IMG/VR virus record: IMGVR_UViG_3300024336_000005
Span: 1 to 64,000 of that record
Direction: 5' to 3' (one strand)
Length of the DNA stretch: 64,000 nucleotides
Below the pieces are notes generated by a model, which worked only from the letters and a program-made list of their open reading frames with translations, had not been told where the DNA came from and searched no databases. Shown here piece by piece: positions 1,747 through 56,424 of the stretch. Both the position numbers and the translations under genes were made by a program. The first letter of the stretch is position 1. The number at the start of each line of letters is the position of its first letter.

Positions 1747-2114
1747 TAGCTTACTGCCCAGGAGCCTCTAATGGGAACATAAGACATGGCCTCATCGCCA
1801 CCCTCTTCGTGTCCCATCATTACGAACCCCTTTTTGTACTGTGATCCAATGAAGAAGATCATACCAGACTCTCCAGGCTGAGGGGCAATATCTTCCGCGC
1901 CTCTTCCTGGAAGCAGTAGGGGAAACTTTGTGTCCCCTACCTTTCCTTTTATGACCTCTCCTCCGTCGCCTATCGTATCCCCAGAGATAATGACCGTAAC
2001 CATATTCTCCTTGGGGAACCATTCTTTTATTCTTATAGGCTTTGGTAGCTGCATGACCTGTTGCATAACAGAGCCGATAAGAGACTCGAGTCTTTTAATA
2101 TGTCCCGCTATCAT
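1746..2114 (-). CDS. Putative baseplate spike/OB-fold protein
   Basis: The ATGA overlap with the hub gene suggests a start at 2114 (MIAG). The PQPGESGMIFF pattern resembles gpV/gp45 N-terminal OB folds. Confidence 0.45.
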   Translation of the reverse strand: MIAGHIKRLESLIGSVMQQVMQLPKPIRIKEWFPKENMVTVIISGDTIGDGGEVIKGKVGDTKFPLLLPGRGAEDIAPQPGESGMIFFIGSQYKKGFVMMGHEEGGDEAMSYVPIRGSWAVS

Positions 2115-5100
2115 CTTGCCACCCAGTTGGCCCAACCCTGATCAGCGACCTTAACCGCTTCAGAAAGGCCATCCCCAAAGTACTTCCACTTTCTCGTTAT
2201 AATTGCTCCAAGCGCCCTATCAGATGTCTCTTCGTCGGCGCTGAAGATGTCCTTCACAACAAGCCCATCGGACTCCATTCCCTCTACTCCTGCGATGAAG
2301 GGCTTTCCCTGCTTAATCAAAGGAACGATGATTATGGGTTCTCTTGTGAGGTTGTACTTCAAGAACTTGTATAGAAGTGAGCCAGCGACAATCCCAGAGA
2401 CTGCAACTGTGATGGGAAGGCCGGCTGTAGCAACTACTCCTAACCCTCCTGCAATAACACCACCCACTCCAGATGTGAGACCAACTCCAGCTACAGCGCC
2501 AGATGCTGCGGCTGCAGCACCCGTAGCCGTAGCCGACACTGTGGCTCCCGCTAGCGCAGACGTTGCAAGAGCCCCTCCTCCAATAGCAGCTGTTCCTGCT
2601 CCAGATATGGCGGAGTTTGTGAAGTCCTTAATAGTCTCAGTAAAGAAAGCGCCCATGGCGTCTGCCATGGTAACTGTAAGCCCCTCCTTTACTTCTACAA
2701 TCATATTAGGCACAACCTCTGTAATGAAGCCTACGTCTGAGGACAAGGTATGCACAACCTCCTCAATCTCCACAGGTCCAGCCATGTCTGAATAGTTATC
2801 ATAGATCCATACATAATCATACGGCTTCAGCTTTGGCTTCCCTACGATAATGATATCTCCCTTATAGGTTCTCTTTAGTGAGTTGGCCATAAGCTGAGAA
2901 GCATACCTTCTTGCGAGGTTGCTTGTTGAGCAGTTTGGCCAACTCTCGATGACCCTTCTTATGTGATGCTCTTTGATATTGTCATCAGCATTTACGATAA
3001 GTGACTCGGCTGAGCCGCCGTCGTCAAAGTCGGCTAGATTGACATTATTGTCTGAGTATCTAAGCTCGACGCTGTTGAACGTGTCTCGATGGTCGCACCT
3101 TATGTTGTTGCTGATTATATCATGCATGCTCGTAACAAGCTCGTAGTTCCTGAAAGACCTCATCCTTCCCTCTTGATGATACATTGTCGACTTCCAGAAC
3201 TTAGCATCAGGGATAGATTTTATGTCTCCCTCCTCTGTAAGGGCTGCCATCTCCTGGATTCTTTTGTACTGCTCCTTTGCATGAGGTTGATAAACTGCTA
3301 GGTCATCAACACTTTCGCCGAATCTGTTCCCGCTCGCAAGGACCCTTGTACCCTGAGAGAAGAGCTCTTTTCTAGACTGCTGGAGGAGGACGTCCTGCCC
3401 CTGGTCCGCCAGCTCCTGGCTGAGCGGACTCGACTGAGAAGAGAGGGCATCCAGTTGCCGCTTCTGGGTGTCGTATCCAAGGCCAACGATGCTTTCCCTC
3501 TTGTCAAAATCCATCTTGTTTCCGAGCGCCTCGGCTTCTCGTTCTTGTGATGTTTTTGCGGGACGATATAGATATTCCATTGATGGATGGCCGAAGAACA
3601 TTGTCATACGGGCGTCGATGCCGTCCCCATAGGGGACTGGATAAGCTATATAACCGGGGTGGCGGAGCTCTGCTTCCTTAAAAACATCCCACACCGTGGT
3701 GTCGAAGAAGACATACTCTAGGTCTCCCCAGAATCTTTCCCATCCAGATGAATAGGTTTCGAAGTCAGGTATGAAGATGTTGTCATCTTGAGCGCCTGGC
3801 TTCCATGTCCAGACTCTTTTAGTCTGGCCATCTGGCCGAAGCTTCTCTGTCCCAAAGAGTGGACCGAGCAGGTCAATGTCCTTGAGGTGCCATCTTCCGA
3901 AGTGGCGAACTTCCTCTCTGTCCATGCAGTCATGCAATAGATCTGATGTCTCTACGTTCCATTGGTCAGCATTCGCTGAGGGGTCTGTCCCAAAGCGATG
4001 CGAGACGAGCTCTGAGCCATAGCTCTGAGCAATAATCTCTACCAAGTGAGAGCCGGACCATGAGGCAATCTGGCCGACGAACATTGTCTCTAGTTGAGCT
4101 GGGTCATTGCTGTATCCAAACTTGACTACGACCTTCATTCCCTCTTTGATTACGGTATCCAAGAAAGGGTTTCTCGCTCCCTGAGACTTGGTCAGTCGAT
4201 TACCGAATGCATCTCCTTCCTTTAGGTACTTCCTATTATAAAGAACTCCGTCGAGGTCCATGATCTGCATGACACAAACGTCCGCTGCCATAGTCTTGCT
4301 CTTAATGATGCGGACTTCCTTGACAGAGTTGACTCCGTAGAAATCATCAAGGGCGTAGGATGTGAAGAGCTTGGCCTCGAGCTTGGTGTCCGAGTTGCGC
4401 GACTCCTCTCCGTTCTCTTCGACGAAGAATACCTTGAATGTGGGGAAGCATCTTCTCGCTGTGTAATGGTCTGATTCGTATGAGGTGGCGAACTTCTGAA
4501 AGATCTTCTTATACTCACCCTCTTCAAATATGTGCATTGTCTTGTTCAAGTTGAAGGAGTCTTCTGTGAAGTCGGCCTTTGCAGGGGAGTTCTGCATATG
4601 CATGTTCAAGGACTTCTTTCTCTTGTAAGTCTTCTTTCCCTCTCTGTTCTTAAATCTTCTGTCGATGCCTTGGGTGGTTCTGCTTACTCCAGGTTGCCCC
4701 AGCTTTCCTCTGGCTCCAGAGATCATTGCTCCCTGAAGGTCAGGTCCTACTGGACCACCCCCTATTGCTGCTGTTACAAAGTCTTCACGGAATTGCTTCT
4801 GTCCGTTCACATACCCCTTGAACTCCCCTCCATTCTGCTTAAGGTATGAGCCGTCTTGGCCTTCGTGGACGGGGCGAATGCCACCGTCCACTGCGGGGTC
4901 GACCCCGTAAGCGTGCCTGTGCCCTTGTACGGAATCGTCCATAGCTTTGAATGATTCCCTTATGCCTAGCTTCTTTGGCATTCCATTGACTGCTGATCCG
5001 TGCACAATCTCCAATAGGTTCGAGTTGCATAGCTTAACGTCAGACTCGTTGTACAAAAAGAAGTCTGGAGTCATGTCTATAGCAAGGCCTGTTATGGGGT

Positions 5101-8100
5101 TGGGCGGGAGGAGGAGGTCTGGGTACGCCTCGTGCTGTGGCTGGTATGCCCGCGCCTTTGTGATCTTCTTCAGGATCTTAGGGAAGGCTAGATCCCCAAG
5201 GCCGTCCTCTGCTGTTCCTGCGATTGTGATGACTCTTCTTACAAGGGCCTTTAGTGTAGTGTGGTCCGGTCCTTCTGGCGAAGCCATTCCCAGATCTAAG
5301 CCAAAGTAATCCTTTAAAGATCTGCGCTTCTTGGATCCAAATAGAATGATCCATACAGCCTCTGGAAAATCTATGGCAACATACTGAGGTGGGATGTTTT
5401 TGCCATATGCCTTTGAATACTCTTCTCCGGAGATTATACGGCGCCCTTCAAACGATCCGCTTAAGGAGATCCTTCTACTGGTGGCCACACTAGAGGATAG
5501 ATCTGCTATGTCCTGCAGAGTTTTCCCAACCACAGGAATCGAAGGATTGGCATTAAAAACGACAGCCCCTGCGCTGGCGTTGTTGGATGTCAACTGCTCA
5601 AAGAATTCTACTTTGTTCTGGGCTTCGAAGCGCAAAAGGTCCCAGCTCTTTTGCCCAATCCTAACGCCATTGTAGATGGCGTTAGGGCCCTTGGCTTCAA
5701 TCTCTTGCAGCGCTGCCTTGGCTAGTTCTAGCTTAGGGTCTACTGACTTATTAGATACCGCCCCTTTCTTTGCGTGGGGTACTATCCAACCGTTCTGAAG
5801 GATCCTTATGAGGCCTTCATGGAAGATGGTGTCTAGATCTAGGCTATCCGTTCCGGTTAACAAGGGGCGTAGGGCTGGGTTAGTCGTGGCGTCGATTACC
5901 GATAGGTTGACGATCAGACCATTGGGGTTCCCAGGGACCGTGTCTACTGTGAGGTTCTCTATCATCACCTCTCTGAGGTTCATGGAGTTGAGGAGGGCGT
6001 TCTTTATGCGAATGCCCCTCTTGTCGGAGAACTCTCTGAAGTAGATGGCCGCCTCTTCTGAAGAGTTAACTAGAGACTTCAGCTGAGAAAGGAACTCTCT
6101 GCCTGCCTCACCTTCGCATCTTAGTGAGATGGTCGCAGCTGTGTGCTGCCCTCCAGTGTACTGCACTGTCGGGAACCTGTGCCCCTCTAGTGGGATCATA
6201 GCTAGGTTGGTGGCAAAGCCAACGCTGATTGCCAAGGGGATCACTCCAACTGATTCGTCAGGAACTGCCAGTGTGATGCCCTTAATCATAGCAGGCTTCC
6301 CTGTGATGACATTCTTTCTTAAAAGCCATCCTGTTGAAGCTAGCTCGACTATGGCGTCGTAGACCTTTCTGGTTCCCTGGTCAATCTGAGGAGACTTGTT
6401 TAGTTGACGGCGGACCTCGGCGTTAAGAGCTGGTCCCTGAATGCCCTCCACGCCAAGGCCTTCGGCAATGATAGTTACAGCATCGTTCGGATCAATGTCT
6501 ACAACCTCTTCCATCTTGGTCTTACTGGTGCTGACGTTCCCCTTTAGAAGCCTCTCTGCCTGCTGCTGCACACGCTCCTCTGTTGAACCTTTACCCTGAC
6601 GATAGAACCTAACGGCACTAACGGCTTGTGTGATCCCAAGGACCGTTAGCCTATTGGCCCCTCCCTTCTCCCACTTTGATCCGACCCTATCTGCTGAGGC
6701 GATCCTGTCATCTCTGGTCTTACCCTTCATGCTCAGGGGATGGATAAAGCTTGTAACTCCCTGCAGTGACTCTCCAGTTCTTCTTATGTCAAGTACTGCC
6801 TTGACCTGCTCTATCCTTGTGTCCAGCGTGGCCGCCTTGGGAACCCTAGCGCTGGAATACTTTCTTCTGCCACCCTGCTTTCCTGTTACGTTGCCAGGAC
6901 CCACGGCATACCACCATACACTTCTGCCTTTTCTTAGGGCATTGTTGAATAGCGAATGGATGATGGCCTGCCTCTCTTCTAGAGATCCTCTAGGCTGCTC
7001 TGAGTTGAGAACAATAGCAGCAACAAGGATGTCCTCATGGACATTCAACTTCCTTGCCCAGGTGACTATGTCACCTTCCCTTAGGGTTCCCGAAGTGGTG
7101 CTAACGTCAAGACCCCTTGATCTTCTTTCTTTTCTCTCTTTCTCAAGCTGGACGTCTGCCTCAGCATCAGTGATCTTAATGATAGAATCTAGAACCTCTT
7201 TGGGAGGTGACTTTATTATGTCGAACCCAAAGGAGATATCCTTGTCAAAGGAGTCAAGAACATAGGGAGGGAACTGAAGAAGAGATGCAGCAGCTGAGGA
7301 CTGGACGCCTCCCATCTTATCCCCAATATTTGTTGACTCGTATCTATACGGCCATAGGTACTCATGCAGGGGCCTGGCTTTATGGATGTCCTCTGAGTTA
7401 GTTCTTGCTGCAGCGGCATTGAAGGCCACTGAAGGGTGGCCATAGTTCTCAATGAACTTGGCCCTGCCTGGGTGCTCAGCTCTGTCCTTCTCTGTGCTGC
7501 CGTCCCAATATCTATCAGACATCCCTTTTACAACACCCTTAGTTCCATCAGCCCACTCTGTCCTGAACTTTATCTTAGGCATGAAGGGGCGGTGGTTAAA
7601 CCACACAAATTGAAACTCTGCTGTTATGGCATTTGGCATGCCAGGTACAGTGCTGATGTTCACCGACTGAATGAAGGCTCCTATGTTCTCGCCTGTTAGC
7701 ACCTCATAATCTGCATCGCCAAGCTTAACGACCTTCTTGTAGGAAGCAATGGGAAGGTTTCTGCGCAGCAACTCGTTGTCCAGGAAGCACATGGGCATCT
7801 TCTTTAGACTGTAGAGGATAGGCATCAAGGTCTCGTTTAATGTTCTTAGAGCGCTTGCGCCACTTGTTGGCACTCGCGCTTCGCGCCCTGTGATGCCAGT
7901 AAAGATGGCTCTAACCGAGATGTTGATTCTGCTGTGGCCACTTCGTACCTTTGACGACTCTCTAGTTCTGAGAGTCTGATACTTGTGGTTAAAGTTCTCT
8001 TCTGAGATAGATATCCCCTGAGGATCTACTGGAAAGCGGATCCCATTGATTTCGAACTGACCGTGAAGCAGAGGTCCAGGCACAAGGGCTGTGCCATTCT

Positions 8101-8188
8101 GGTCTGTATGGTACACGACCCTTTGACTCTTCGAGACGCGGTTGAATTCTTCTGGGAGATTCCCAGCTTTAATCTGAAATTCTTTCAT
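2111..8188 (-). CDS. Large baseplate hub-like virion protein with a possible SleB/Hydrolase_2-like muralytic domain
   Basis: 2025 aa. Hub-like segments (IKEGMKVVVKFGYSND..LETMFVG; GKPKLKPYDYVWIYD..GPVEIEEVVH). Internal AAIVLNSEQ...AIIHSLFN...KYSS...TSFIHP segment. Gly/Ala hydrophobic C-terminus. Confidence 0.6.
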   Translation of the reverse strand: MKEFQIKAGNLPEEFNRVSKSQRVVYHTDQNGTALVPGPLLHGQFEINGIRFPVDPQGISISEENFNHKYQTLRTRESSKVRSGHSRINISVRAIFTGITGREARVPTSGASALRTLNETLMPILYSLKKMPMCFLDNELLRRNLPIASYKKVVKLGDADYEVLTGENIGAFIQSVNISTVPGMPNAITAEFQFVWFNHRPFMPKIKFRTEWADGTKGVVKGMSDRYWDGSTEKDRAEHPGRAKFIENYGHPSVAFNAAAARTNSEDIHKARPLHEYLWPYRYESTNIGDKMGGVQSSAAASLLQFPPYVLDSFDKDISFGFDIIKSPPKEVLDSIIKITDAEADVQLEKERKERRSRGLDVSTTSGTLREGDIVTWARKLNVHEDILVAAIVLNSEQPRGSLEERQAIIHSLFNNALRKGRSVWWYAVGPGNVTGKQGGRRKYSSARVPKAATLDTRIEQVKAVLDIRRTGESLQGVTSFIHPLSMKGKTRDDRIASADRVGSKWEKGGANRLTVLGITQAVSAVRFYRQGKGSTEERVQQQAERLLKGNVSTSKTKMEEVVDIDPNDAVTIIAEGLGVEGIQGPALNAEVRRQLNKSPQIDQGTRKVYDAIVELASTGWLLRKNVITGKPAMIKGITLAVPDESVGVIPLAISVGFATNLAMIPLEGHRFPTVQYTGGQHTAATISLRCEGEAGREFLSQLKSLVNSSEEAAIYFREFSDKRGIRIKNALLNSMNLREVMIENLTVDTVPGNPNGLIVNLSVIDATTNPALRPLLTGTDSLDLDTIFHEGLIRILQNGWIVPHAKKGAVSNKSVDPKLELAKAALQEIEAKGPNAIYNGVRIGQKSWDLLRFEAQNKVEFFEQLTSNNASAGAVVFNANPSIPVVGKTLQDIADLSSSVATSRRISLSGSFEGRRIISGEEYSKAYGKNIPPQYVAIDFPEAVWIILFGSKKRRSLKDYFGLDLGMASPEGPDHTTLKALVRRVITIAGTAEDGLGDLAFPKILKKITKARAYQPQHEAYPDLLLPPNPITGLAIDMTPDFFLYNESDVKLCNSNLLEIVHGSAVNGMPKKLGIRESFKAMDDSVQGHRHAYGVDPAVDGGIRPVHEGQDGSYLKQNGGEFKGYVNGQKQFREDFVTAAIGGGPVGPDLQGAMISGARGKLGQPGVSRTTQGIDRRFKNREGKKTYKRKKSLNMHMQNSPAKADFTEDSFNLNKTMHIFEEGEYKKIFQKFATSYESDHYTARRCFPTFKVFFVEENGEESRNSDTKLEAKLFTSYALDDFYGVNSVKEVRIIKSKTMAADVCVMQIMDLDGVLYNRKYLKEGDAFGNRLTKSQGARNPFLDTVIKEGMKVVVKFGYSNDPAQLETMFVGQIASWSGSHLVEIIAQSYGSELVSHRFGTDPSANADQWNVETSDLLHDCMDREEVRHFGRWHLKDIDLLGPLFGTEKLRPDGQTKRVWTWKPGAQDDNIFIPDFETYSSGWERFWGDLEYVFFDTTVWDVFKEAELRHPGYIAYPVPYGDGIDARMTMFFGHPSMEYLYRPAKTSQEREAEALGNKMDFDKRESIVGLGYDTQKRQLDALSSQSSPLSQELADQGQDVLLQQSRKELFSQGTRVLASGNRFGESVDDLAVYQPHAKEQYKRIQEMAALTEEGDIKSIPDAKFWKSTMYHQEGRMRSFRNYELVTSMHDIISNNIRCDHRDTFNSVELRYSDNNVNLADFDDGGSAESLIVNADDNIKEHHIRRVIESWPNCSTSNLARRYASQLMANSLKRTYKGDIIIVGKPKLKPYDYVWIYDNYSDMAGPVEIEEVVHTLSSDVGFITEVVPNMIVEVKEGLTVTMADAMGAFFTETIKDFTNSAISGAGTAAIGGGALATSALAGATVSATATGAAAAASGAVAGVGLTSGVGGVIAGGLGVVATAGLPITVAVSGIVAGSLLYKFLKYNLTREPIIIVPLIKQGKPFIAGVEGMESDGLVVKDIFSADEETSDRALGAIITRKWKYFGDGLSEAVKVADQGWANWVAR

Positions 8189-11100
8189 CGATTAAGCCTC
8201 TTCCTTAGGTACTCTTCATTGATTCGCTCTCTGTAGTCGTTCATTGTATATGAAACATTTGCTCCAGGGAAGCGTTCCTGCATCATTCTTGTTGCAGCAC
8301 TTGTGTCAATGTCACCATTAGTTCTACCGCTTATTCTGATGGACCTTCCAGGTCCTGCAGAAACTGGTGCTGATTCCCCAAAGCCTGGGCCATCTTCTGT
8401 TGGACGACCAGCGGAGTGACGAGCTCCGGCTTCATTGGCCATTTCTGCTGTTACATTACCAGGGGAGCTGAGTAGTAACGATGTGGCGACTGCCGCTGCC
8501 GCGCCTATGAGCGCTGGCCGCTTGTGCCTCTTGACCGCCGAAAGAAGATCCTTAAAGGTTCCTGCAGCTGTCTTCAGGTGTGACTTAGTGGCACCTGGTC
8601 CCTGAATGCCTATCTCTTCCATAGCCTTTCTGCCGAATGCAGAATGAGGAGAGGGGGTTGTAGCATCAAGAACTCTATCTGTCAGCCTCATCATGTCGAC
8701 CCCTTCCCTTTTCTTCAGGGTCTTAGTGATGATGTTCTCGTCTTCGTTTCCTGGGTTTGCAATTACAGCATCTATAACCTGTGGGATATACTCTAGCAGC
8801 TTTGGCACTAGCTTTGACGCCCCTCTTGGGTCGTGGATGTTCTTGAAGGCGTTGGTCATTGTGTCAATCTGTTCTTGCCTTGACAGCTTCCCAACTCCCC
8901 TTCCTGTCAAGATGTCATGCATCTGATCAATGGATTCTCCGATGGACTCTTTGAACTTCTCTCTGTATTCCATAAGTCCGCCAGCACCAGCCTGCTTTGC
9001 CTTAAGTGCTGTCTCCGGCATGATTCCCAAAAGCATTTCCGTGAAGAGCCTTCCCTCTGCCTTCTGTCCTGTTGTTGTAGCTCTGAGGTGCTCACGAACA
9101 AAGTCCGTTGCATTGGTCATGGAGCCGATGTATCCCTTCTCCATCTCTGCCATCATTGCCATGCCTGCTTGCTGCTTTTTCCAGGCAGGGGACCCTCTTG
9201 TGACATCCGCTCTAGTTAGAGCGGGGATGTCTCTATCCTTTAGGCCCTTGTATAGCTCCCTCTGTCTGATCTTATAGACATAGTCTTCTGCTGCAAGCTT
9301 TTGCTCAGTTGTTGTGGCGCGGGCTATGGCTTCTTCTGCTGTGGCTCCTTCCGTGAGCATCTCTCCCATGAAGCCTGCGCGCTCCCTAAGTCGGGAGACG
9401 CCGCTTCTATCCTTGCCTAAGATTAGGTCAAGCTGGTCGTCGTCGAAGTCGGCGCCCAAGATTTGTTCCATCTGCTTAGGCAGCCATAGGGCATGCTTAT
9501 CATACTGGCTAAGGAGACCTTCTGTGTACTGCCCCTTCCAGTAGTCCGCTGACCCCTTTAGTGTCTCAGCTTGGATGTTCGCCTGCTTAGCGGCCCAGCT
9601 GCCGTCGTCGATTGCTTTAATCTGCTTATGTATTCTGTTCCTCTCTTTGGTGATACTCTTACTGCTTCTTTTCTTCCCCCCTTTCCTTTTCCTTCCAGAT
9701 TCCTTAAGCGTTTTAAGGTCCTCCTCGAATCCGATTCTTCTTCCTCTTGCCTCTCTGATGGCCTGCTGATGGAACTCATCCCAGAGGTCTCCCCCCTCCA
9801 GCAATGCCTTTCTTGCTGTGTCATGCCTAGACTTATCGAGAGAGAAGAACTCTCTTGAAATCTCACTAGCTGAAAGGCCGCTCATGCGCTGAGACGTATA
9901 GCGTCTCATTGCCTCATCGACTGAGAACATCTCTACAGAAGAGATACGGTGTAACTCTGTGCCTGGCTGCCTTGCCACCACGCCCGCAGCCTTGCCTTGG
10001 CGGAGAGCTGTCATACGCTCATCAAGCTGGCCGCCCCCTACTGCACCCATCTCTCCTAAGATTCGCTCGAACTGAGACTCTCTAATTCCAACCTTATGGG
10101 TGAACTCTTTCCCCATGAACTCTAAGACATCATCTGCGATCTGAGCCCTCGCCTGCTGGCGGAGGGACCCCTGTAGTTTTCCTGAGTACATGGCAGAAGG
10201 GGCTTGCTTCTTCCCAAGGATGATGTCTTGAACCCCTTCGTCGTATGCCGCTACCCCCTTAGCTACATCATCCACCTTGTCGTCCCAATGAGCTTTGGCA
10301 ATATTCTTTGTAGCCTTATCTATTGGACTTGTGGTGATGTCCCCACCAGCAGTTCTGAATCCTCCTGTGTGTGTGCTTATCCCTTCGGGGTGGAAGATTT
10401 GCCTCCCGTCCCCTAGATCAAACAGGAGGTGGCCTGATGTGTTGACTCCAAACTTTTTTCTTACTACTTCGAAGGCATTGCTACGCTCTTTTTGGTTCCT
10501 CCCGAATAGAGAAGACAGGACGGTATCACCGGGCCCTCCAAAGGCCTTCCCAAAGGCCTTCATGTCTATGGTGGATTTGGCAGCGGATTCTCCGACCCCC
10601 TTATAGAACGCACCCATCCTCTTGTAGACATCCTTTGCCTCAGCCGTCTTGTCTCCTGTCAGTCTCCCTGCGAACTCAATCCCAAGGTCTGCCATTACCC
10701 CGCCCTGGGCTTGCATGTGCTTCATCATGGGGAGGTTGAAGGAGCCGGCCTTGCCTGAGCCTACGGTCAGGGTTGGGCTTTGGTTTGCCGAGAAGGACAT
10801 GTTCATAACGCCATACTGCATCTGACCTTGAAGGGAGGCTAACATCTTGTTCCTCATCCCCTCTTCACCGCGCAGCATCTTAAGCGCTTCGGCTCTTCTT
10901 TCTCCTGCGCTTAGATTGGCCTTAGCCTTAAACATTGCCCTGGACGCTTCGTCAAACATCTCCTCGTTGACGCTCATATCTGTGAAGAGCTGCTTGGCCG
11001 ACCAACGTCGCACCTTGTGGTGAGTGCCCTCATGCATTGTCTCTTCGAGCAGTTGCTCGAAGCTCTCTACAATGTTGGTCTTAGTTTCATCAACAACGAA

Positions 11101-13656
11101 CCTTCCATCTTGGAAGGTTACGCCACTCCTCGAGAGGGCGTCCTCAATGGCGGCACGCTCTGCCTGCCTTTTTATGACCTTGGTCCTTACCTTGTCTCTT
11201 CCTGGATACTCTGTCGCGCCTGGTGCAAATTCTTCCTCTCCTATGCTGGCCAGCTCCCTGGTTAGATTTGTATGCTCTGTTGCCAGCTCGCTGGCAAGGA
11301 CCTCTGCTGTTTTTGCAAGAGACTTTGATCCAATCTTCTTTAGTCCCTGAGTCTCAAGAGTTTGGACACCTCGAGCCTGCCTCAATGCGCTTTCCCAAGC
11401 TCCTCTCTTCACTCCCTTTGGCTTGAACTTGTGAAGTAAAGGCGCCCTTCCATCAGGGTTCTTCATCCATTCTTCCGCATGACCTATCCTAAACTCTTCT
11501 AGTGCCGCCGTGTACTTCTGGTGGCCTTCAGCGGTATCTTCCCATGGAGCTGCAATAGAGAGAGCTGCCATGAAGCGACCTTCTGACCTTCCTAGCTGTG
11601 CACCCGCGACTCTCTTCTGGTCAAACATCTTAGATCCGACGGTCAGTTCTTCTTCTGTGTGGCCCCTAAGAACAAGCTCTCCAACCCTGTCTTCCCCTGG
11701 ACCCCCTCTTCTTTTTACGTAGTCCATACGGTCAAGGTTAAAGGTGCCCACCTTTGATGCGTGCTGCAGTCCGCCCTCGGCGAGCTCTCCTACGATAACA
11801 TCTGGACCTATCTGCCTCCCCTCTCTTAATGCCTTTAGCTGCTCTTGGAGCCGGGTTCTAAGTCCATCTGGGAGATCCTCCGCCAACCTTGCTTCATGTC
11901 TGGCAATAGTCCCAGAGATTCCATCGGTTCTTGATGCCGATCTCCTCGCAAGCTCGCTCTCATCTCCTGTCAGAAGCTCTGACAAGAATTCCGTTACGGG
12001 AGAATCCCCTTGGATCCTTACTGTCTTGTGGGCCTTGATCCTGATGTTATCATCTATGAGAATATTGACGTCTTCATGCAGCCCTATATCAGGCCTGCTG
12101 GAACCTCTAAGCATTGCTCTCATAATGCCTTCAGGTGCAGCAGCTGTTCTGTTGTAGTTCCTTACATCTCCCATCTGCTCCTGGAGCATTCCCTGGATTG
12201 CTGTCACTCCTCTATTCCTGCTTGATACTACGGTTCCTCTTGTGGCCTGCGAAACGGTCTTGTTGTCGCCGACAAGGCCTCCAAATGCTCCTGTTCCTAT
12301 CGTCCTATCTGATGGAAGTATGCCTACACCCGCAACCTCCTGCGAAGGAGAGATGCCAGTTGTGAAGCTGAGACCAAGCTCATGGGCGCGCTCGTTTATT
12401 GCTTTGATTCCGGTATCCGTCAGGCTTTCTCCAAGAGGGCTTCCCTTGAATCTGAATTGAGATGCATGCTTCTTGTTGAGCATAGGGTTGGCCGAATCAG
12501 AGATGATTAGGCCTCCCACCTCATCATGGTAGCTTGTCTGTATGCCTCTCATGAATTCTCTATGAGATTCAGATGTAAGCTTGCCAGCGGATAGCTTCTC
12601 TTTCACGCCTCGAAGAAGAGCCACATCTAGAGATTCAGTAAGCGACTCGATCGGGACCCGCTCTCCTGCTGCAAACCTCGAGGCATTCTCAGTAAGAACT
12701 CGGCGAGCATAACCTCGGTCTTGTCCGTAGTAACCAAGACGAACGCTGCCGTTCTCCTGGACAAGAGGGACGTCTATTGGGGAGCTGTATGGTACGTTTG
12801 ACTTAATGCGGACTCCAGAGATTATCTCCCTTCCTCCTTGCTGTAGATACTGAAGTCTCATGCTCATGTTCATCTTTGAAGCTTCTTCAAAGAGCTCATG
12901 TGTCATGCTGACCAGGTCGCCCCGGTCGGCTCTATTTAGTCCACCCATCAGTTCTTGAATTTGATCAATGCCGGAGATCCTTACAGATCTGGATCTATTT
13001 GAAGCGCTTAGTGCGTTGTTTAATGCCTCGTCCGCCTTCATGAGTTCGCCTACAGTTTGTGTTGTCTTGAATGCTTCATTGGACCTGATGATTGAGGCGG
13101 CCGATGACTCTGCTCTCTGAGAGAGAGCTCGACTTGTTAGTGGGTCGGTTGTGTCAATGTTTGTCAGACTGAGCATTCCAAAGCTTCTGGCCACCTTCTC
13201 AACATGGCGAACGTGCTTTGGGCTTATGTCTAGCAGCTTTCTAAAGGATCCATCAGGGCCACCGGTGATGGTCGAAGGGTCGCTGGTTATGCCGAGTCTT
13301 CGAGCTGCGTCGTGCAGTCCAAAGTTTTTAATCAAACTTCTGGTAGCCCTGTCTCTTCCTGCTCCAAAGGCTTCTTTTACATCTGGATTGCTAAAGAAGG
13401 AGCTGGCCTCGGGGCTTGAGTATCTTCTTCCGGTGTCTAACCACATTTCTCTAGTAAGGTCAGCTGCAGTCATTTCATATCTGCCTTCCCTTGCTTCCTT
13501 TACTGCGGCGAGAAAAGTCTCTGTGGACTTCTGTGCGTCCCATCTTCTTGTGACAGTACCAGCTGCATTGATGTCGCGCAGAGCCCTGACACCAGACATG
13601 CCTACGCCAGTTGCTAGCATACCGGGAGCTACGTACTCTCCAAAAAAATCAGACAT
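8185..13656 (-). CDS. Putative single-chain two-barrel (DPBB) RNA polymerase, probably virion-associated
   Basis: Ordered motifs: GLHED (~aa 528), VGSKMFDQK (~aa 676-681), GKLQGSLR (~aa 1166), VVARQP (~aa 1229), ALWLPKQMEQILGADFDDD (Asp triad at nt 9436-9450), GYIGSMTN. Confidence 0.72.
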   Translation of the reverse strand: MSDFFGEYVAPGMLATGVGMSGVRALRDINAAGTVTRRWDAQKSTETFLAAVKEAREGRYEMTAADLTREMWLDTGRRYSSPEASSFFSNPDVKEAFGAGRDRATRSLIKNFGLHDAARRLGITSDPSTITGGPDGSFRKLLDISPKHVRHVEKVARSFGMLSLTNIDTTDPLTSRALSQRAESSAASIIRSNEAFKTTQTVGELMKADEALNNALSASNRSRSVRISGIDQIQELMGGLNRADRGDLVSMTHELFEEASKMNMSMRLQYLQQGGREIISGVRIKSNVPYSSPIDVPLVQENGSVRLGYYGQDRGYARRVLTENASRFAAGERVPIESLTESLDVALLRGVKEKLSAGKLTSESHREFMRGIQTSYHDEVGGLIISDSANPMLNKKHASQFRFKGSPLGESLTDTGIKAINERAHELGLSFTTGISPSQEVAGVGILPSDRTIGTGAFGGLVGDNKTVSQATRGTVVSSRNRGVTAIQGMLQEQMGDVRNYNRTAAAPEGIMRAMLRGSSRPDIGLHEDVNILIDDNIRIKAHKTVRIQGDSPVTEFLSELLTGDESELARRSASRTDGISGTIARHEARLAEDLPDGLRTRLQEQLKALREGRQIGPDVIVGELAEGGLQHASKVGTFNLDRMDYVKRRGGPGEDRVGELVLRGHTEEELTVGSKMFDQKRVAGAQLGRSEGRFMAALSIAAPWEDTAEGHQKYTAALEEFRIGHAEEWMKNPDGRAPLLHKFKPKGVKRGAWESALRQARGVQTLETQGLKKIGSKSLAKTAEVLASELATEHTNLTRELASIGEEEFAPGATEYPGRDKVRTKVIKRQAERAAIEDALSRSGVTFQDGRFVVDETKTNIVESFEQLLEETMHEGTHHKVRRWSAKQLFTDMSVNEEMFDEASRAMFKAKANLSAGERRAEALKMLRGEEGMRNKMLASLQGQMQYGVMNMSFSANQSPTLTVGSGKAGSFNLPMMKHMQAQGGVMADLGIEFAGRLTGDKTAEAKDVYKRMGAFYKGVGESAAKSTIDMKAFGKAFGGPGDTVLSSLFGRNQKERSNAFEVVRKKFGVNTSGHLLFDLGDGRQIFHPEGISTHTGGFRTAGGDITTSPIDKATKNIAKAHWDDKVDDVAKGVAAYDEGVQDIILGKKQAPSAMYSGKLQGSLRQQARAQIADDVLEFMGKEFTHKVGIRESQFERILGEMGAVGGGQLDERMTALRQGKAAGVVARQPGTELHRISSVEMFSVDEAMRRYTSQRMSGLSASEISREFFSLDKSRHDTARKALLEGGDLWDEFHQQAIREARGRRIGFEEDLKTLKESGRKRKGGKKRSSKSITKERNRIHKQIKAIDDGSWAAKQANIQAETLKGSADYWKGQYTEGLLSQYDKHALWLPKQMEQILGADFDDDQLDLILGKDRSGVSRLRERAGFMGEMLTEGATAEEAIARATTTEQKLAAEDYVYKIRQRELYKGLKDRDIPALTRADVTRGSPAWKKQQAGMAMMAEMEKGYIGSMTNATDFVREHLRATTTGQKAEGRLFTEMLLGIMPETALKAKQAGAGGLMEYREKFKESIGESIDQMHDILTGRGVGKLSRQEQIDTMTNAFKNIHDPRGASKLVPKLLEYIPQVIDAVIANPGNEDENIITKTLKKREGVDMMRLTDRVLDATTPSPHSAFGRKAMEEIGIQGPGATKSHLKTAAGTFKDLLSAVKRHKRPALIGAAAAVATSLLLSSPGNVTAEMANEAGARHSAGRPTEDGPGFGESAPVSAGPGRSIRISGRTNGDIDTSAATRMMQERFPGANVSYTMNDYRERINEEYLRKRLNR

Positions 13657-16600
13657 TATGTACCATACCTAACGCCGGCCCGTTCAAGGGCTGAGGCGAG
13701 TTGACCAGATCTATCTGCGTCAATGTCAAAAACAATTCTTGTTTCATTACCACCAGTTGCGACTATTTGAACATCTAAGTTATGCAATTCCATTTGTTGC
13801 AAGGACTTTGTAATATAGTCTCTTTCTTCTGCCTTGCCTTGGAGCAGCTCTTCAGCAGCTACATCCAAGTAGGGCTTTCTTCTCGCCATAGCTACATCAT
13901 CTTCCCAGATGTTGAAGTCATGATGGTCCAATCCTAGATTCTCTACGACTCTAAGCTTTACATCATCCATTGCAATGGCAGGGTCATATCCAAGCCAGTC
14001 AGTTGGAGGCGCATCCAGTGGAGACTCATCGTCAAAGTATCCCCCTAGTCTCTTGCCTCTTATGAAGTCTGGGAATGTATTCGCACGAACTGACCCACTT
14101 GCTACTTCAGATTGATACTCTCCCCAAGTTGATCTGGAAGAACTCTCTCCCTCTAGTGCTCGAGCTGCTTCAATCTGCTGAACCATTGAGACTTCATCAC
14201 TACTTAGGTCTCCCTTTGCAGCTAAGGATGCATGAATCTGCTTTTGCCACTGGCCAAGGTAGAACTTCTTTGTATACTCTGGAACAAGTTCTAGTATCCT
14301 ACCCTTCTCTTCAGATGTTTCTGCGGCTATGAAGTCCTTAAAGAAAGGCTTCTCCTCTCTGGGCAGGGACTTCATGATGGAGTCTACTGTCCCATAGGGG
14401 TCGGCTCCATACATTGTGTACTCAGCTTTTCTGGCATATGCGAAAGCAGCGGAGCCATCGTCCTGCGCCCTCGCAGCTCCCTCAAGCTTCTTATACTTCA
14501 TAAACTCGAGCTTATCGAAGTATCCAGTCAGCTCTCTCCGCTGAGACTCTGCCTGAGGAATGCCATCGTAGCCAAACATCCGGGCTGCATTCGTAACAGC
14601 CGGGGCGACGAAGTCGTCAAGTGGGTCTCCCCAGGAGGGGGATGCTACTGAATAGACGTTCTTCGACTCGTACTCAGAGATTGGATCCAGGGCTCCAGCA
14701 AACTTGTGTACTGGAGATAAGGGAATTAAATGCTCAACAGGATTGGCCCTACCAACCTTCTTAAGCATTTCCCAATAACCGCCAATGATCCCTTTGTGCT
14801 CTCCGAATGGAACCTTGCGGCTCTTCTCCTCTGTCTCGGCTCTTGTGGCACGGTACAGCATTTCATCTTGATCTGACAGCTGATTAGAATCAGCCATTGA
14901 ATCCATTCTTTGACTTACGTCTTTAAACTGCTTGGAGTATGGAGCGACATCAGCAAGAATCCTGTACTTGTGGATGTCAGGATAGTCTTCTAATGAAGTG
15001 CCCTCTAGTTCAGGGAACCTGCTTTCATACCCTGAGCCTGGGAGTCTATACTCACCTTCTTGGATTGATGCGTATGGGTCTCCATGCTGGAAGTCGTTGA
15101 AGTACTCAGCGCCCGGCATCCAGTCTGGCATTTCATTTGCAATTGGGTTGACCTTCTGTAGTTGGAATCTTTCATTTGGAAAGATTCTTCTGAAGGCCTC
15201 TGTCGTTCCAAATCCACCACCAATGTTGAGGTCCCAATAGTTGTCTCCGACTGACCCCATCTGTGAGAAGGATTCCAATACTGGGTCTTCAGTTCCGAAG
15301 TCCTGTTCACCTGTTATCGCCTTTTTGATAGCAGTGAACACGAAGCCCGGCAGACCTGCCGCTTCTGTGGCCTTGTAGGCCGCCTCACCGCCCAGGAAGG
15401 AGGCAGAGTAGGGTGATGCAGCGGGTGTGGGTCCAAGGCCGCCTAAGGTACCTTCAGGCGCATCTGAGACGGATGTCCCATATTGGATAACTTCGCCATC
15501 GTCAGCTCCTTCGGTCCCACCTGAGCCAAGCTCATCTGTGTGCATGTATGCGGGGTTCTTTAGAACCCTTCCTACAGTGGCCCCCCATAGTGTACCAAGG
15601 GGGCCGAAGCCTGATGTCTCTGGTCCTGTTACTGGATAGGGTCTCTCATAGTAGAACTTCTTTTCTCTCCAGTATGGATCGATGAGCCCCTTAATGAATC
15701 TAGAGAACGGCCTGTCGGCGTACTCGTCATGTTGCAGGTCACCGAAGGCGTCATCTTTGGCGCGGGCGAACCAGCCTGGACGATAGTAATCTATCCCCTC
15801 TCCCTCTATGTCTGTCCTGCCCATTTCCCAATAGGCACCCTTACGTACTGCTACCTCAGTTTCACCAGACTGTTCTGCAAGGGTTTCATCGTAGCTCTTA
15901 GAAGAACCAAGTGAGCCCAATGCGAATGGGGCGGCTAGTAGGCCGCCCACTACTGCACCTATTGCTCCAAACCTTCCTCCTCTAGTCTTTGCTCCCTTAA
16001 ACATATTGCCTATGAGAGGGGTATCCTCTAGGCGCTTAAGGGCTGAAGGTAGTTCATGGATCTCTTCTCTTGCGGCTCTCCAACCGAACTCCCCTGCTTC
16101 TTTTACTAGGGGCGCCGTAGCAGAAGCTACCATGTGGCCAGTCAGGAAGCCAGATAGGCCAAAGCCTATGTGAGCCATCATCCTGCTAGAGCCGGGAGCT
16201 TGCTCCTCTTGATACTGTCCGAGAGCGGTTAGACCTGTCAGGTCAGAGGTTGCGGCGTATGTTCTTTGTGCGGCGCCTACAACTTCTGCTCCTACTTGAG
16301 CAACATTCTTGTCAAGGAAGAGATTCGTTATAGCAGAGCCTGCCTCATAGCCTAAGGCCAGACCACCAGCCACTAGGCCTATCCTGCCAGCATGACGAGC
16401 CCAGAGGTCTATTACACTTCCAGAGTAGTCTCCTCCTGTCCCAAGGAGGTTCTTAAAGAAGCCATACGCAGAGGAGCTCTGAGCCTTCTTAAGCAACCCG
16501 CCTTCTGCTCCTGGCCCTCCATGAATTAACTCTTCATAGAACTCTAGAGGAGCGTCAAGGATGCGCATGTATCTTTCAGACATGCGCTTTGCAAATACAT

Positions 16601-17468
16601 GTGCATCCCTAATGCCCTTATGAGCACCTTCAGGCAGGTTGGCTGAGAGCCTCTCTTCCATCTTTGTGACATCGCCAAAGGGCTCTAAGAATTCTCTTGT
16701 GATGCCTGTTATCTTTAAGTCGCCGCTTGCCTTGGAAACCATGAACCTAGCGGGGTTAGACTCTCCTATCTCTGCCCCACGAATCTTCGTTCCGCCCATG
16801 AACTCAGTGACAATATCTGCATCTCTGATTCTATGGTTGAATCTATCTGGTGCGCCTTCTGGAGACCACCTTCTAACCTGGACATCCACATCACTTACTA
16901 ATGGAGACGCCTCCAGTTCGCCGCTTGCTGTCTTTCCGAATAGCCCGAGCTTGCCTTGGTGCGGAGCAACCTCTAGTCCCCTTAGCATATCAGACGGCTT
17001 TAGCTTTTCTCCTGCATTCTCCATTAGAGCACGATAGTGCGGCTCTGCCCCTAGAAGATCATCAGGGGAGATGGATAGGCGGGTCGCGGGGGAAGTAAAT
17101 ACATCTCGCGATGCATAGCCAAAGACCCCAAAGGTTCTGGGGATGCCGCCCAGAGTTTCCTCTGTTCGCTTAACCCCCTCGAGGAAGAAGTCCTTAAGGC
17201 GGACAGGGGCCTTGCCGTCTGAGTCTAGCTCAAGCCCGGCAACCTTCCACCACTCATTCCCTGGAGTTGATAGCCCCTCGTGAAGATAGCTAAGCTTGGA
17301 GGGATCGATCTTTATGTGTACGTTCTGCGCTGCGAACTGTACGCCCCTGAGTCCTAAAAAGCTAAGGGCCGCGTATGCTGCGGCCTTAGCAATCTTAGAT
17401 TCAGTCTCCTGGTAGTTCTCAACTTCTACATAGGGCCTTCTATCAATCCCTCTGATTAGACTACCCAT
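13656..17468 (-). CDS. Tape measure-like / ejected tail protein
   Basis: 1270 aa, Gly/Ala-rich helical and hydrophobic segments; follows the tube and chaperone genes. Confidence 0.55.
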   Translation of the reverse strand: MGSLIRGIDRRPYVEVENYQETESKIAKAAAYAALSFLGLRGVQFAAQNVHIKIDPSKLSYLHEGLSTPGNEWWKVAGLELDSDGKAPVRLKDFFLEGVKRTEETLGGIPRTFGVFGYASRDVFTSPATRLSISPDDLLGAEPHYRALMENAGEKLKPSDMLRGLEVAPHQGKLGLFGKTASGELEASPLVSDVDVQVRRWSPEGAPDRFNHRIRDADIVTEFMGGTKIRGAEIGESNPARFMVSKASGDLKITGITREFLEPFGDVTKMEERLSANLPEGAHKGIRDAHVFAKRMSERYMRILDAPLEFYEELIHGGPGAEGGLLKKAQSSSAYGFFKNLLGTGGDYSGSVIDLWARHAGRIGLVAGGLALGYEAGSAITNLFLDKNVAQVGAEVVGAAQRTYAATSDLTGLTALGQYQEEQAPGSSRMMAHIGFGLSGFLTGHMVASATAPLVKEAGEFGWRAAREEIHELPSALKRLEDTPLIGNMFKGAKTRGGRFGAIGAVVGGLLAAPFALGSLGSSKSYDETLAEQSGETEVAVRKGAYWEMGRTDIEGEGIDYYRPGWFARAKDDAFGDLQHDEYADRPFSRFIKGLIDPYWREKKFYYERPYPVTGPETSGFGPLGTLWGATVGRVLKNPAYMHTDELGSGGTEGADDGEVIQYGTSVSDAPEGTLGGLGPTPAASPYSASFLGGEAAYKATEAAGLPGFVFTAIKKAITGEQDFGTEDPVLESFSQMGSVGDNYWDLNIGGGFGTTEAFRRIFPNERFQLQKVNPIANEMPDWMPGAEYFNDFQHGDPYASIQEGEYRLPGSGYESRFPELEGTSLEDYPDIHKYRILADVAPYSKQFKDVSQRMDSMADSNQLSDQDEMLYRATRAETEEKSRKVPFGEHKGIIGGYWEMLKKVGRANPVEHLIPLSPVHKFAGALDPISEYESKNVYSVASPSWGDPLDDFVAPAVTNAARMFGYDGIPQAESQRRELTGYFDKLEFMKYKKLEGAARAQDDGSAAFAYARKAEYTMYGADPYGTVDSIMKSLPREEKPFFKDFIAAETSEEKGRILELVPEYTKKFYLGQWQKQIHASLAAKGDLSSDEVSMVQQIEAARALEGESSSRSTWGEYQSEVASGSVRANTFPDFIRGKRLGGYFDDESPLDAPPTDWLGYDPAIAMDDVKLRVVENLGLDHHDFNIWEDDVAMARRKPYLDVAAEELLQGKAEERDYITKSLQQMELHNLDVQIVATGGNETRIVFDIDADRSGQLASALERAGVRYGT

Positions 17469-33119: not shown

Positions 33120-34484
33120 TTAAGGTGTAGGTACGACCTGGTTACGGTCTAGGGCGCCAATGCTACCACCAACATCAATTGTGCTCTGAGCAGGCAGGAT
33201 GATCTGGTTTGCACCAACTACGACGTTCTTCGCTACTGCAATTCCCATTCCTCTGTTCTTCTCACGAAGGGTGAACCTCTCCTTCAACTTAATCTTGAGG
33301 ATATCAGTCTCGGGGTCCGTCCACTCAGAAGTCATGATCGGGTGATCCTCTACGTAGAAGCCAAGCTCGTTGGAGTCTGCCATGAGGATTGTAGTAGTGT
33401 TGTTCAGCGCATCATAAGGCACGAAGGGGCTTACGATTACGCGGAACGGAATTCCCAGATAGTTAGGCAACACAGGCGCAGAATTTAGGTTCTGGCTGAA
33501 GTCCAACGGGTTCTGGGTGATGACGTTACCATGTCCATCCTGAGGCTCTTGGGCACCAGGAGCAGCCGGAACTGCCGGAACAGGCTGATGAGCAGGGTGC
33601 GAGCGATGGATACCACCGGCAACACCTTCACCACCAAACGATGAAGCAAAGTCATTCTTCGCAGGCGATCCAGTCCACTGACTTCCGAAGAAGGCTCCCT
33701 GGTTCATCTGGGCGAAAGCGCGGAGCTGAGCGTCCTGAACGAACATTAGCCAGGTCAACGGGTGGAGCAGGAGCATGTCGGGAATGAATCCGTTGTGCAT
33801 GATCGAGGCAAACATCTCGAAGATGTCGTCCATTGTCAGGGTACCGTTCTGGGCACCTAGAAGATCACGTCCTGTAGTCGTACCGAAGTTCGAGGCAAGC
33901 GGGGTCTGGTTGTCGTGTGTGGTGTTCGCTACGCTATACCACATGTTGAAGATCTTCTCTTCCTTGTTACGAGCCATTGCTCGGCCGGCCTGACGGACTG
34001 CCATTGTAACAACATCGAAAGTGGAGTAACGAAGTACTTCCTCGGTGAACTTTACAGCCACACCCTGCTTTCCGATCTTGCCAATCTCAGAACCCGGTCC
34101 GTACGCAACACGTAGCTCAGGAAGGGACTCTTCCTCGCCGACGTCGAAGTCGCCGTCAACGGCACCCATTACTGGGAGGTCAACCATTGTTCCAGGCTGA
34201 TACGGGATTTTTTGTAGAAGAGAGGTCGCAATCAACAGAGGCTCAACTGCTTCCTGTACGGCGTTGTTTACGACCTTGGGGATGAATAGCGGGGATTCCC
34301 ACATTGCGAGCGCATCGCTAATTCTTCCTTCTTTGCCGAGCAACCTGCCGTCGGGGCGGACACCGCTGTTCTTCCAGGCGTACTCAAAGTCTCTAAACTT
34401 CTCTCCTGGCGCAGCAGAGGCATCAACCTCGCGGAAATCAGCGAACTTGAGCTGGCGTCTATTCTTTGAACGAATATCACTCAT
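33120..34484 (-). CDS. Major capsid protein (HK97 fold)
   Basis: LFIPKVV...VGEEESLPE...KQGVAVKFTEE...AGRAMARNKEEKIF...PDMLLLHP...VIVSPFVP...LKERF; follows the protease/scaffold gene. Confidence 0.9.
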   Translation of the reverse strand: MSDIRSKNRRQLKFADFREVDASAAPGEKFRDFEYAWKNSGVRPDGRLLGKEGRISDALAMWESPLFIPKVVNNAVQEAVEPLLIATSLLQKIPYQPGTMVDLPVMGAVDGDFDVGEEESLPELRVAYGPGSEIGKIGKQGVAVKFTEEVLRYSTFDVVTMAVRQAGRAMARNKEEKIFNMWYSVANTTHDNQTPLASNFGTTTGRDLLGAQNGTLTMDDIFEMFASIMHNGFIPDMLLLHPLTWLMFVQDAQLRAFAQMNQGAFFGSQWTGSPAKNDFASSFGGEGVAGGIHRSHPAHQPVPAVPAAPGAQEPQDGHGNVITQNPLDFSQNLNSAPVLPNYLGIPFRVIVSPFVPYDALNNTTTILMADSNELGFYVEDHPIMTSEWTDPETDILKIKLKERFTLREKNRGMGIAVAKNVVVGANQIILPAQSTIDVGGSIGALDRNQVVPTP

Positions 34485-41978: not shown

Positions 41979-42448
41979 TAGACATTGCTCTCAGTGTGCG
42001 TCACCTGCAAGGAGAACTGCGACGTACCTATTGGGGCGGCCTTAGACATTGATACATAGATCCAGAAGGGGTAGTAAATCCTATCAGGGGATCCTACTGC
42101 TCCTAGCTCTGGTACGGTTGAGGTGTCCCCGTTGATCAGGGGAGATGCGAGCGTGGCTAGGGCGTTGCTTGGTGCGGCAGCCCACTCTGCATCGGTCGGC
42201 TTATTGTCTCCAGACAGGAGCTTGATGGAGACTGTCCCATCGACAATGTCCGCGCCAGCGGTAGAGGTTGGCTTAATCTCAATGGCATCATACCACTTTG
42301 CCGCATCGTCATTCCTGAGGAATAGCTTCTTTACGAAGCCCGTTCCTCCTGGACGAATCCCAACTGCTATCGGATCTCCAAAGGTTGTAGCCGTAACCTC
42401 TGTAAATAGGAGAGTAGACTCATCAAGCCTATAGATCTTTACTGCCAT
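41978..42448 (-). CDS. Hypothetical beta-rich virion protein
   Basis: Coupled to the terminase gene. Confidence 0.5.
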   Translation of the reverse strand: MAVKIYRLDESTLLFTEVTATTFGDPIAVGIRPGGTGFVKKLFLRNDDAAKWYDAIEIKPTSTAGADIVDGTVSIKLLSGDNKPTDAEWAAAPSNALATLASPLINGDTSTVPELGAVGSPDRIYYPFWIYVSMSKAAPIGTSQFSLQVTHTESNV

Positions 42449-53946: not shown

Positions 53947-54009
53947 TAGGCGGGAGTACGGTTCAATAACAATAGAAAGCCCTTCCGGTGCGGGACGAGA
54001 ATGGGTTCT

Positions 54010-54113
54010 AAAAAAATATGGGAAAGGGAGGGAAATATAGGGGAAAAATAAGGGAAGGCTGAAGGATTGAATATAGAGGAAAATAGGGAAAACATAGGAA
54101 AAATAAGGGAGGA
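54010..54113 (+). repeat. Purine-rich degenerate tandem repeat at the strand switch
   Basis: GGAAAAATAAGGGA exact at 54042-54055 and 54097-54110, with related units around them; G4-type motif at 54020-54043. Confidence 0.7.
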
Positions 54114-54274
54114 CCTAGTGTAAGTGTTGGGAGTAGTAGGGTACCTATCGGTGCGAGCCCCTACCCCGACGACTTGGATAGCATGTTGCTATCACACTGG
54201 GCATAACGTCCAACAACCAGAGAAGTAGCAGGCATATCGTCTGTCTTCTCTATGCATGACTTAGGAGTTATATC

Positions 54275-55081: not shown

Positions 55082-55311
55082 GTAGCATAGGTATGGTGAC
55101 CCCTCTTCGGAGGGGGCTCCATATGGGTACATGTGGGGTGTATGGTGTATGCCATATGCTACTACGTGTACCCATATGGGGTACTGTATAGGTAGTAGGG
55201 TATAGCCCTGCTACTGGTACCACTGGGCATACCACATGGGGTGGTGTGCTATAGCAGGGGGGTGTATAGCCCGAGCCCCCCTCTGTGTATAGTAGGGCAT
55301 AGGGGTACTAT
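55082..55311 (+). other. Highly structured intergenic region
   Basis: CCCCTC-TTCG-GAGGGG; long stem CCATATGGGTAC..GTACCCATATGG; GTAGTAGGG..CCCTGCTAC. Confidence 0.55.
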
Positions 55312-55515: not shown

Positions 55516-55615
55516 GGTGATGGGGCACACGACTGTCGTGAGACAGCCGTGTGTTTAAACCACAGGACCGGTCCAAAGTCCGGTCCAAGCAGCCCCAAGG
55601 GGCATAGGAGTAGTC

Positions 55616-55801: not shown

Positions 55802-55810
55802 CGCCCGATG

Positions 55811-55951: not shown

Positions 55952-55971
55952 CATTAGATAGGAGCTCACCC

Positions 55972-56247: not shown

Positions 56248-56269
56248 AGCAGCGCAGGCCGCCTGAATA

Positions 56270-56406: not shown

Positions 56407-56424
56407 TACATGAAAGGCCATACC

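Follow-up and report, generated by a model that had tools for sequence, protein, structure and literature searches.

A predicted single-chain two-barrel RNA polymerase in the tape-measure slot of an uncultured jumbo myophage

The window analyzed here is a stretch of 64,000 nucleotides (nt), positions 1 to 64,000 of IMG/VR virus record IMGVR_UViG_3300024336_000005, which is part of a 204,008-bp viral contig from an uncultured contractile-tailed phage. Its minus strand carries a long late operon that includes the sheath and smaller tail genes, followed by three giant genes. The middle giant gene encodes a protein of 1823 amino acids (aa), called the target below, which an earlier note made from the sequence had read as a single-chain two-barrel RNA polymerase carried in the tail. 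As set out here, conservation of an aspartate triad and the structural matches of a confident predicted model support the polymerase part of that reading, and comparison with related phages places the target itself in the slot annotated as tape measure. The gene and the regions of its protein are as follows.

8185..13656, minus strand: whole gene, 1823 aa, ATG start, no cysteine; tape-measure-slot protein with a predicted single-chain two-barrel RNA polymerase core (open reading frame, model, Foldseek)
12325..13656, minus strand: N-terminal domain, residues 1-444, whose hydrophobic N-terminus is conserved (alignment; separate gene in relative L003)
11587..12234, minus strand: beta-like barrel region, residues ~475-690 (alignment, model, beta-chain Foldseek matches)
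12070-12075, minus strand: HED(E) motif, E528/D529 (alignment)
11629-11631, minus strand: invariant K676, with a conserved K/R 5-7 residues further on (alignment)
9412..10182, minus strand: beta'-like barrel region, residues ~1159-1415, with GKxxGSxR at 1159-1166 and RxP...HR at 1229-1237 (alignment, model, Foldseek)
9505-9921, minus strand: variable helical coiled-coil insertion, residues ~1246-1384, between RxP...HR and the Asp-triad unit (model)
9436..9450, minus strand: predicted catalytic DFDDD, with D1403, D1405 and D1407 invariant (alignment)
8947..9189, minus strand: two long helices, residues ~1490-1570, at putative bridge-helix and trigger-loop positions, with the E1506-K1552 block (alignment, model)
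8458..8526, minus strand: hydrophobic segment after basic residues, 1711-1733 (conserved in the family)
8188..8427, minus strand: C-terminal conserved domain, residues 1744-1823 (hhalign, profile-profile comparison, hmmsearch)

The six motifs that the earlier note had listed as counterparts of RNA polymerase active-site motifs are all present in the open reading frame, in the order given there. The beta-like pair is GLHEDVNI (residues 525-532) and LTVGSKMFDQKRV (671-683), and the beta'-like motifs are GKLQGSLR (1159-1166), VVARQP (1226-1231), and ALWLPKQMEQILGADFDDD (1389-1407). The last, GYIGSMTN (1508-1515), lies in the model in a long helix after the beta'-like barrel, where a bridge helix would be expected. 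A DxDxD by itself is weak evidence, because 0.3 single occurrences are expected by chance in a protein of 1823 aa.

Conservation within the family was more informative. A word-indexed search returned 4 relatives, and an exhaustive profile search of 1.84 billion representative proteins returned about 28, most of them 1650-1930 aa long. Twenty full-length members with 17-42% identity to the target were aligned, and an extended set comprised 24 sequences. Only 20 columns are invariant in the 20-sequence alignment: M1, K676, G968, Q984, R1058, G1159, P1231, D1403, D1405, D1407, E1506, K1507, G1511, N1515, R1521, E1540, E1548, K1552, G1718, and D1807. Eight of these (K676, G1159, P1231, D1403, D1405, D1407, G1511, and N1515) fall within the 62 residues of the flagged motifs, compared to 0.68 expected (hypergeometric P of 1e-7). 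Loss of the Asp triad in homologs had been named beforehand as a finding that would speak against a polymerase; D1403, D1405, and D1407 are unchanged in 24/24 aligned homologs. Within DFDDD, the first, third, and fifth positions are constant and the fourth is D, A, N, Q, or G, which reduces the motif to a DxDxD pattern. Invariant K676 is followed 5-7 residues downstream by a second K/R in nearly all 20 sequences, and the ED motif of the beta-like region is mostly HEDE in the family.

Structure prediction depended on the depth of the alignment. AlphaFold run on a five-sequence alignment gave an unusable model, with a predicted local distance difference test score (pLDDT) of 48. A second alignment of 24 sequences, enlarged from the exhaustive representative search, gave an AlphaFold2 model of residues 445-1640 with a pLDDT of 84.7 and a predicted template modeling score (pTM) of 0.79 (protein residue = model residue + 444). 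When this model was compared with the PDB (350,542 chains) using Foldseek, each of the best 50 matches was a large subunit of a bacterial RNA polymerase. Most were beta' chains, such as 8w8p_D (E of 2.9e-4, probability 1.0, ~780 aligned columns), and beta chains 5d4c_M and 8hsg_I were also among the 50, at ~360 columns. None of these best 50 was a PolD or QDE-1 entry, and gp66 of phage phi14:2 was absent from them as well, though bacterial RNA polymerase entries may crowd gp66 out. In BFVD, a set of predicted viral structures, three uncharacterised phage proteins lead, and RNA polymerase subunits of giant viruses and phages rank next. The fold check proposed in the earlier note thus came out in favor of a polymerase, as far as a predicted structure can speak to it.

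Details of the model agree with the local matches. In the beta'-like part, strands are predicted at GK and GSxR and around RxP..HR, and the Asp loop lies within a strand (LWLP)-helix-loop-strand (QLDLI) unit, as in beta'. Two predicted long helices (model residues 1046-1083 and 1089-1124) hold eight invariant residues. The model therefore predicts beta-like and beta'-like barrels in one chain, with the catalytic residues intact; alignment and model together make it very probable that the chain folds as a two-barrel polymerase whose active site is conserved. The N-terminal 444 residues are an independent module with a domain boundary at their end, because in relative L003 (8646-14308) this part is a separate 452-aa gene that shares an ATGA overlap with the polymerase gene, so that the gene has been split naturally at this boundary.

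Likeness to the cellular subunits is confined to fold and short motifs. The Pfam domain models of Rpb1 and Rpb2 and the NCBIfam models did not match the target, and neither did Pfam RdRP (PF05183). The best hhalign match between the family profile and Escherichia coli beta' was weak (E of 0.037), yet it fell exactly at the active-site NADFDGDQM segment, which was paired with LWLPKQMEQILGADFDDDQL of the family; the same comparison with E. coli beta gave nothing significant, nor did one with the phage protein ME3_36 described below. Searches by tblastn of 50,697 GenBank phage records with the target and with P0028, the most divergent member, found no match. A scan of a metagenome collection for relatives returned duplicates only, and a scan of a genome collection found no relatives and so provided no prophage or host clue. 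Because every sequence-based membership test run (Pfam Rpb1/Rpb2, Pfam RdRP, and hhalign against gp96 of phage P23-45) came out negative, the proteins are best regarded as a new family and not as members of a described one.

The phage context of the gene was established from its neighbors and from the slot genes of related phages, which are listed here.

13656..17468, minus strand: upstream 1270-aa gene, TAATG-coupled, homolog of ME3_35 and 0305phi8-36 gp145 (E of 7e-57 to ME3_35)
2111..8188, minus strand: downstream 2025-aa gene, ATGA-coupled, homolog of ME3_37 and 0305phi8-36 gp147 (sequence match)
21253..24216, minus strand: tail sheath, 987 aa, heading the tail module (family libraries)
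33120-34484, minus strand: major capsid (late operon)
37630-39702, minus strand: portal (late operon)
42448-44412, minus strand: large terminase (late operon)
L017:33172-37983: ME3_36 slot gene, with DxDxD (GGDHDQDQ)
L020:16359-23906: WH1 gp095 slot gene, with DxDxD (KADHDGD), weakly colinear with the family model
L018:23900-31513: 0305phi8-36 gp146 slot gene, no DxDxD
Moorella phage MTATph1 CDS0027: slot counterpart, no DxDxD

Sheath, terminase, portal, and major capsid genes together identify a myophage late operon, and the 204,008-bp IMG/VR viral contig marks the source as a jumbo myophage rather than a particle that injects toxins. A toxin-delivering contractile injection system, which the sheath and giant proteins could suggest, was excluded by the presence of terminase, portal, and major capsid in the same operon.

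The three giant genes (2111-17468, minus strand) are translationally coupled, with TAATG (1-nt overlap) upstream of the 1823-aa gene and ATGA (4-nt overlap) downstream of it, and the overlaps described in the earlier note for both sides are real. The role given there to the upstream gene, that of tape-measure candidate, was dropped: it is a homolog of ME3_35 of Acinetobacter phage vB_AbaM_ME3 (ME3) and of gp145 of Bacillus phage 0305phi8-36, and synteny puts the target in the slot instead. Gp145 was identified in virions by mass spectrometry and has no assigned role, and ME3_35 is likewise annotated as a virion structural protein. On the other side, ME3_37 is annotated "baseplate hub protein," relatives of the 2025-aa protein carry Peptidase_M23 or SLT domains, and 0305phi8-36 gp147 has been assigned as a homolog of T4 gp27 (PMC2147016). 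Searches of the PDB by sequence with both flanking giant proteins returned nothing.

Gene order is identical in the contigs of all four relatives: sheath, tube, small genes, a ~1260-aa gene, the target, a ~2000-aa Peptidase_M23/SLT gene, three small genes, and Baseplate_J. Synteny of the gp145 homolog, slot gene, and hub extends to ME3 and 0305phi8-36. In the latter, ORF146 lies between both flanks and is annotated [quoted passage not shown] although the tape-measure assignment of gp146 came mainly from tail length and is hence tentative (PMC2147016). Because its flanks are the gp145 and gp147 homologs, the target itself occupies the gp146 tape-measure slot, and its position in the slot of a virion protein strengthens the case that it is packaged in the tail.

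A C-terminal module common to the target and the slot proteins of 0305phi8-36, WH1 (Bacillus phage vB_BceM_WH1), and ME3 provides a second link. It consists of a basic-then-hydrophobic segment ~100 residues from the end, seen in 0305phi8-36 gp146, WH1 gp095, and ME3_36, followed by a terminal domain. Support came from hhalign (E of 0.003), a profile-profile comparison (E of 2e-4, 107 columns, probability 46%), and hmmsearch, with independent E-values of 8e-6 for WH1 and 7e-4 for gp146. The terminal domain is probably a tail-assembly or anchoring module. The slot proteins of the target phage, ME3, WH1, 0305phi8-36, and Moorella phage MTATph1 all lack cysteine; within the window, cysteine is absent from the 1823-aa and upstream 1270-aa proteins and makes up 0.4% of the 2025-aa hub. 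Cysteine scarcity in giant tail proteins fits passage through the tail or periplasm.

The interpretation we favor, with a probability of roughly 0.6, is that the tape-measure-slot protein of this 0305phi8-36/ME3-type myophage is an injected single-chain two-barrel RNA polymerase. The central ~1150 residues would form the enzyme, with the conserved lysines contributed by the beta-like barrel and the DxDxD magnesium site by the beta'-like barrel, and with the bridge-helix-like and trigger-loop-like helices next in the chain. The protein would be made late, together with the tail proteins, and incorporated into the tail via its C-terminal module, that is, the hydrophobic segment and the ~80-residue domain. 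Sheath contraction would then expel it through the tube before the DNA, and it would transcribe the first phage genes without host polymerase, possibly while its hydrophobic segment keeps it at the membrane. The link to the virion is drawn from synteny, from the C-terminal module shared with virion protein gp146, from the translational coupling, and from the lack of cysteine; from these and the conserved active site we infer virion packaging, injection, and enzyme activity.

Several observations weigh against an injected polymerase. At the level of sequence, the target found no family, and thus no RNA polymerase match, in Pfam (E up to 0.1), PHROGs, or NCBIfam; a search of the PDB by sequence with the family profile returned coiled-coil noise only; and hhalign against residues 1-1540 of P23-45 gp96 produced only a spurious match, with a probability of 1.3%. 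Within GK..GS.R, residues K1160 and R1166 are frequent in the family and not universal. Foldseek TM-scores are low (~0.12), so the fold match is a local one and not a rigid global superposition. The slot proteins of 0305phi8-36 and MTATph1 contain no DxDxD. The predicted globular shape of the core is difficult to square with residence in a narrow tail tube, and because only ~630 residues are left outside the polymerase core, with no long tape-like region among them, a length-measuring role for the target is uncertain.

A rival reading is a structural protein of the tail lumen, or a tape measure, in which an RNA polymerase-like fold has been exapted as a catalytically dead scaffold. The target lies in the tape-measure slot, and since the 0305phi8-36 and MTATph1 counterparts have no DxDxD, the function of the slot needs no catalysis. 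A scaffold, however, should not constrain exactly the Asp triad, the beta-like lysine, and the putative bridge and trigger residues, and these are the most conserved positions of the family; we consider a dead scaffold unlikely. The low sequence similarity could also mean that there is no polymerase fold at all, only a chance motif match and an unreliable model: there was no sequence-profile match, the five-sequence model scored a pLDDT of 48, and Foldseek E-values are modest (3e-4). Enrichment of invariant residues in the flagged motifs (P of 1e-7), the confidence of the second model, and the restriction of the best 50 of 350,542 PDB chains to RNA polymerase large subunits, both beta' and beta, make coincidence very improbable.

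If the active site is functional, the enzyme might still do something other than transcribe early genes after injection. It could be an RNA-dependent RNA polymerase, a maker of replication primers at entry, or a PolD-like DNA polymerase, as the superfamily holds RNA-dependent RNA polymerases and archaeal PolD (PMC10770324; PMC7824862) and motifs do not reveal template or product specificity. The closest folds are nonetheless the DNA-dependent beta' and beta, with no PolD or QDE-1 among the best 50 and no match to Pfam RdRP, and we think another polymerase job improbable. A real RNA polymerase might alternatively remain outside the virion, its gene lying in the late operon by chance, as non-virion single-chain examples are represented by YonO and 0305phi8-36 gp99 (PMC2147016; PMC7824862). 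We give this possibility little credence: the gene is coupled between virion protein and hub genes in an order kept in every relative, the C-terminal module is common to a virion protein verified by mass spectrometry, and an enzyme made only late would be useless for early transcription unless carried to the next cell.

Comparison with known systems places the injected polymerase proposed here closest in function to P23-45 gp96 and closest in fold to bacterial beta and beta'. Gp96 is also a two-barrel single chain with DxDxD in the tape-measure position of a tail module, and it has been proposed to be ejected through the tail and to transcribe pre-early genes (PMC10770324). P23-45 is a siphophage whose 5002-aa protein has an N-terminal polymerase followed by ~3500 residues of tape, whereas the target belongs to a myophage, is 1823 aa long, and has its polymerase in the center, flanked by a 444-aa N-domain and a 183-aa C-module. 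Like bacterial beta and beta', the target carries an ED motif and lysines, then GK..GS.R, RQP..HR, ADFDxDQ, and putative bridge/trigger-like helices in the same order. It does so in one ~1150-residue chain instead of two chains of ~2750 residues, with helical insertions in place of the flap and other lineage domains, and none of the alpha, omega, or sigma partners is evident.

The crAss-like Cellulophaga phage phi14:2 is also reported to send its polymerase, gp66, into the cell with its DNA to transcribe early genes (10.1101/2020.03.07.982082). Its virion is podovirus-like, with no tape-measure slot, and this description sets the target apart from gp66. The phi14:2 enzymes reportedly group with QDE-1 (PMC10770324), unlike the target, whose fold is closest to cellular beta'/beta. 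The YonO-type enzymes (SPbeta YonO and 0305phi8-36 gp99) are likewise single-chain two-barrel polymerases; they are not in the virion and belong to an RdRP-like family, and the Pfam model for that family finds no match in the target. The classic injected polymerase, the virion RNA polymerase of coliphage N4, has a T7-like fold unrelated to the two-barrel fold.

Among phages sharing the slot, 0305phi8-36 gp146 resembles the target in its position, flanked by the gp145 homolog on one side and the gp27-like hub on the other, in its hydrophobic segment and C-terminal domain, and in its lack of cysteine. It differs in its length (2537 aa), in having no DxDxD, and in showing no detectable similarity to the target beyond the C-terminus; 0305phi8-36 has a separate YonO-like protein, gp99 (PMC2147016; PMC7824862). 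ME3_36 and WH1 gp095 are more alike, with the same slot, C-terminal architecture, DxDxD, and absence of cysteine as the target, but their cores have no significant sequence similarity to it. A BFVD model from ME3 is among the top structural matches to the target (E of 8e-7, TM of 0.49), and it is probably ME3_36, because half of its 1603 aa fits the 802-aa piece in the database. In the literature searched, neither ME3_36 nor WH1 gp095 is described as a polymerase, and no polymerase is described for the tape-measure slot in any myophage or jumbo phage. We see about an even chance that an unrecognised, minimal family of RNA polymerases with fused beta and beta' serves as the slot protein in 0305phi8-36-like jumbo myophages, ME3 and WH1 included, and arose independently of that in Thermus siphophages.

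A two-barrel polymerase joined to the tape measure has so far been reported only in P23-45-like Thermus siphophages; the 2024 paper on P23-45 called the association of polymerase and tape measure "previously unsuspected" and listed the fusion for Thermus phages only (PMC10770324). If the interpretation is correct, contractile-tailed jumbo phages would have found the same solution with an unrelated polymerase family whose fold is nearest to cellular beta/beta', and the filler of the tail lumen would itself be the enzyme that starts transcription of the infection. This would explain how jumbo phages with no recognisable polymerase might begin transcription. It would also give the tree of two-barrel polymerases a new and very compact branch, with a bearing on the reduction or origin of the multisubunit enzymes, and it raises the structural question of how a globular 1150-residue enzyme passes through a tail tube. 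The idea is directly testable, because cultured phages ME3 and WH1 carry the slot gene with DxDxD.

Elsewhere in the late operon, a 1278-aa cysteine-free protein is encoded upstream of the terminase (48033-51869, minus strand). It has a staphylococcal-nuclease domain at ~1003-1146 and a weak Bud32-like kinase stretch at 811-912, shares PHROG 8809 with the 2025-aa hub, and may be another ejected protein.

The remainder of the window differs in composition and orientation. From ~54 kb (about 53950-64000), the GC fraction rises from 0.50 to 0.63 and genes turn to the plus strand. Their products are rich in Lys, Glu, and Ala and have no family matches, and two paralogous genes start at 58669 and 61158. 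This GC-rich region may form its own transcription unit, early or distinct in some other way. Where the late operon and the plus-strand block diverge, the spacer (53990-54130) is AT-rich and packed with purine-rich ATAGGGAAAA-type repeats. An intergenic Twister-P5 ribozyme (Rfam RF02684) lies at 55516-55583 on the plus strand, with 50.7 bits compared to a gathering score of 37.6 (E of 2.2e-8). A family of hairpins at 56263-60950 (plus strand) is conserved in loop and closing pair (stem-CTGAAYAAG-stem) and has covarying stems. Its six exact copies occur only in plus-strand intergenic spacers, grouped by two or three, with GCTTTACATTT after the last of a cluster. These hairpins may be phage-specific terminators or promoters, and are candidate signals for the phage polymerase.

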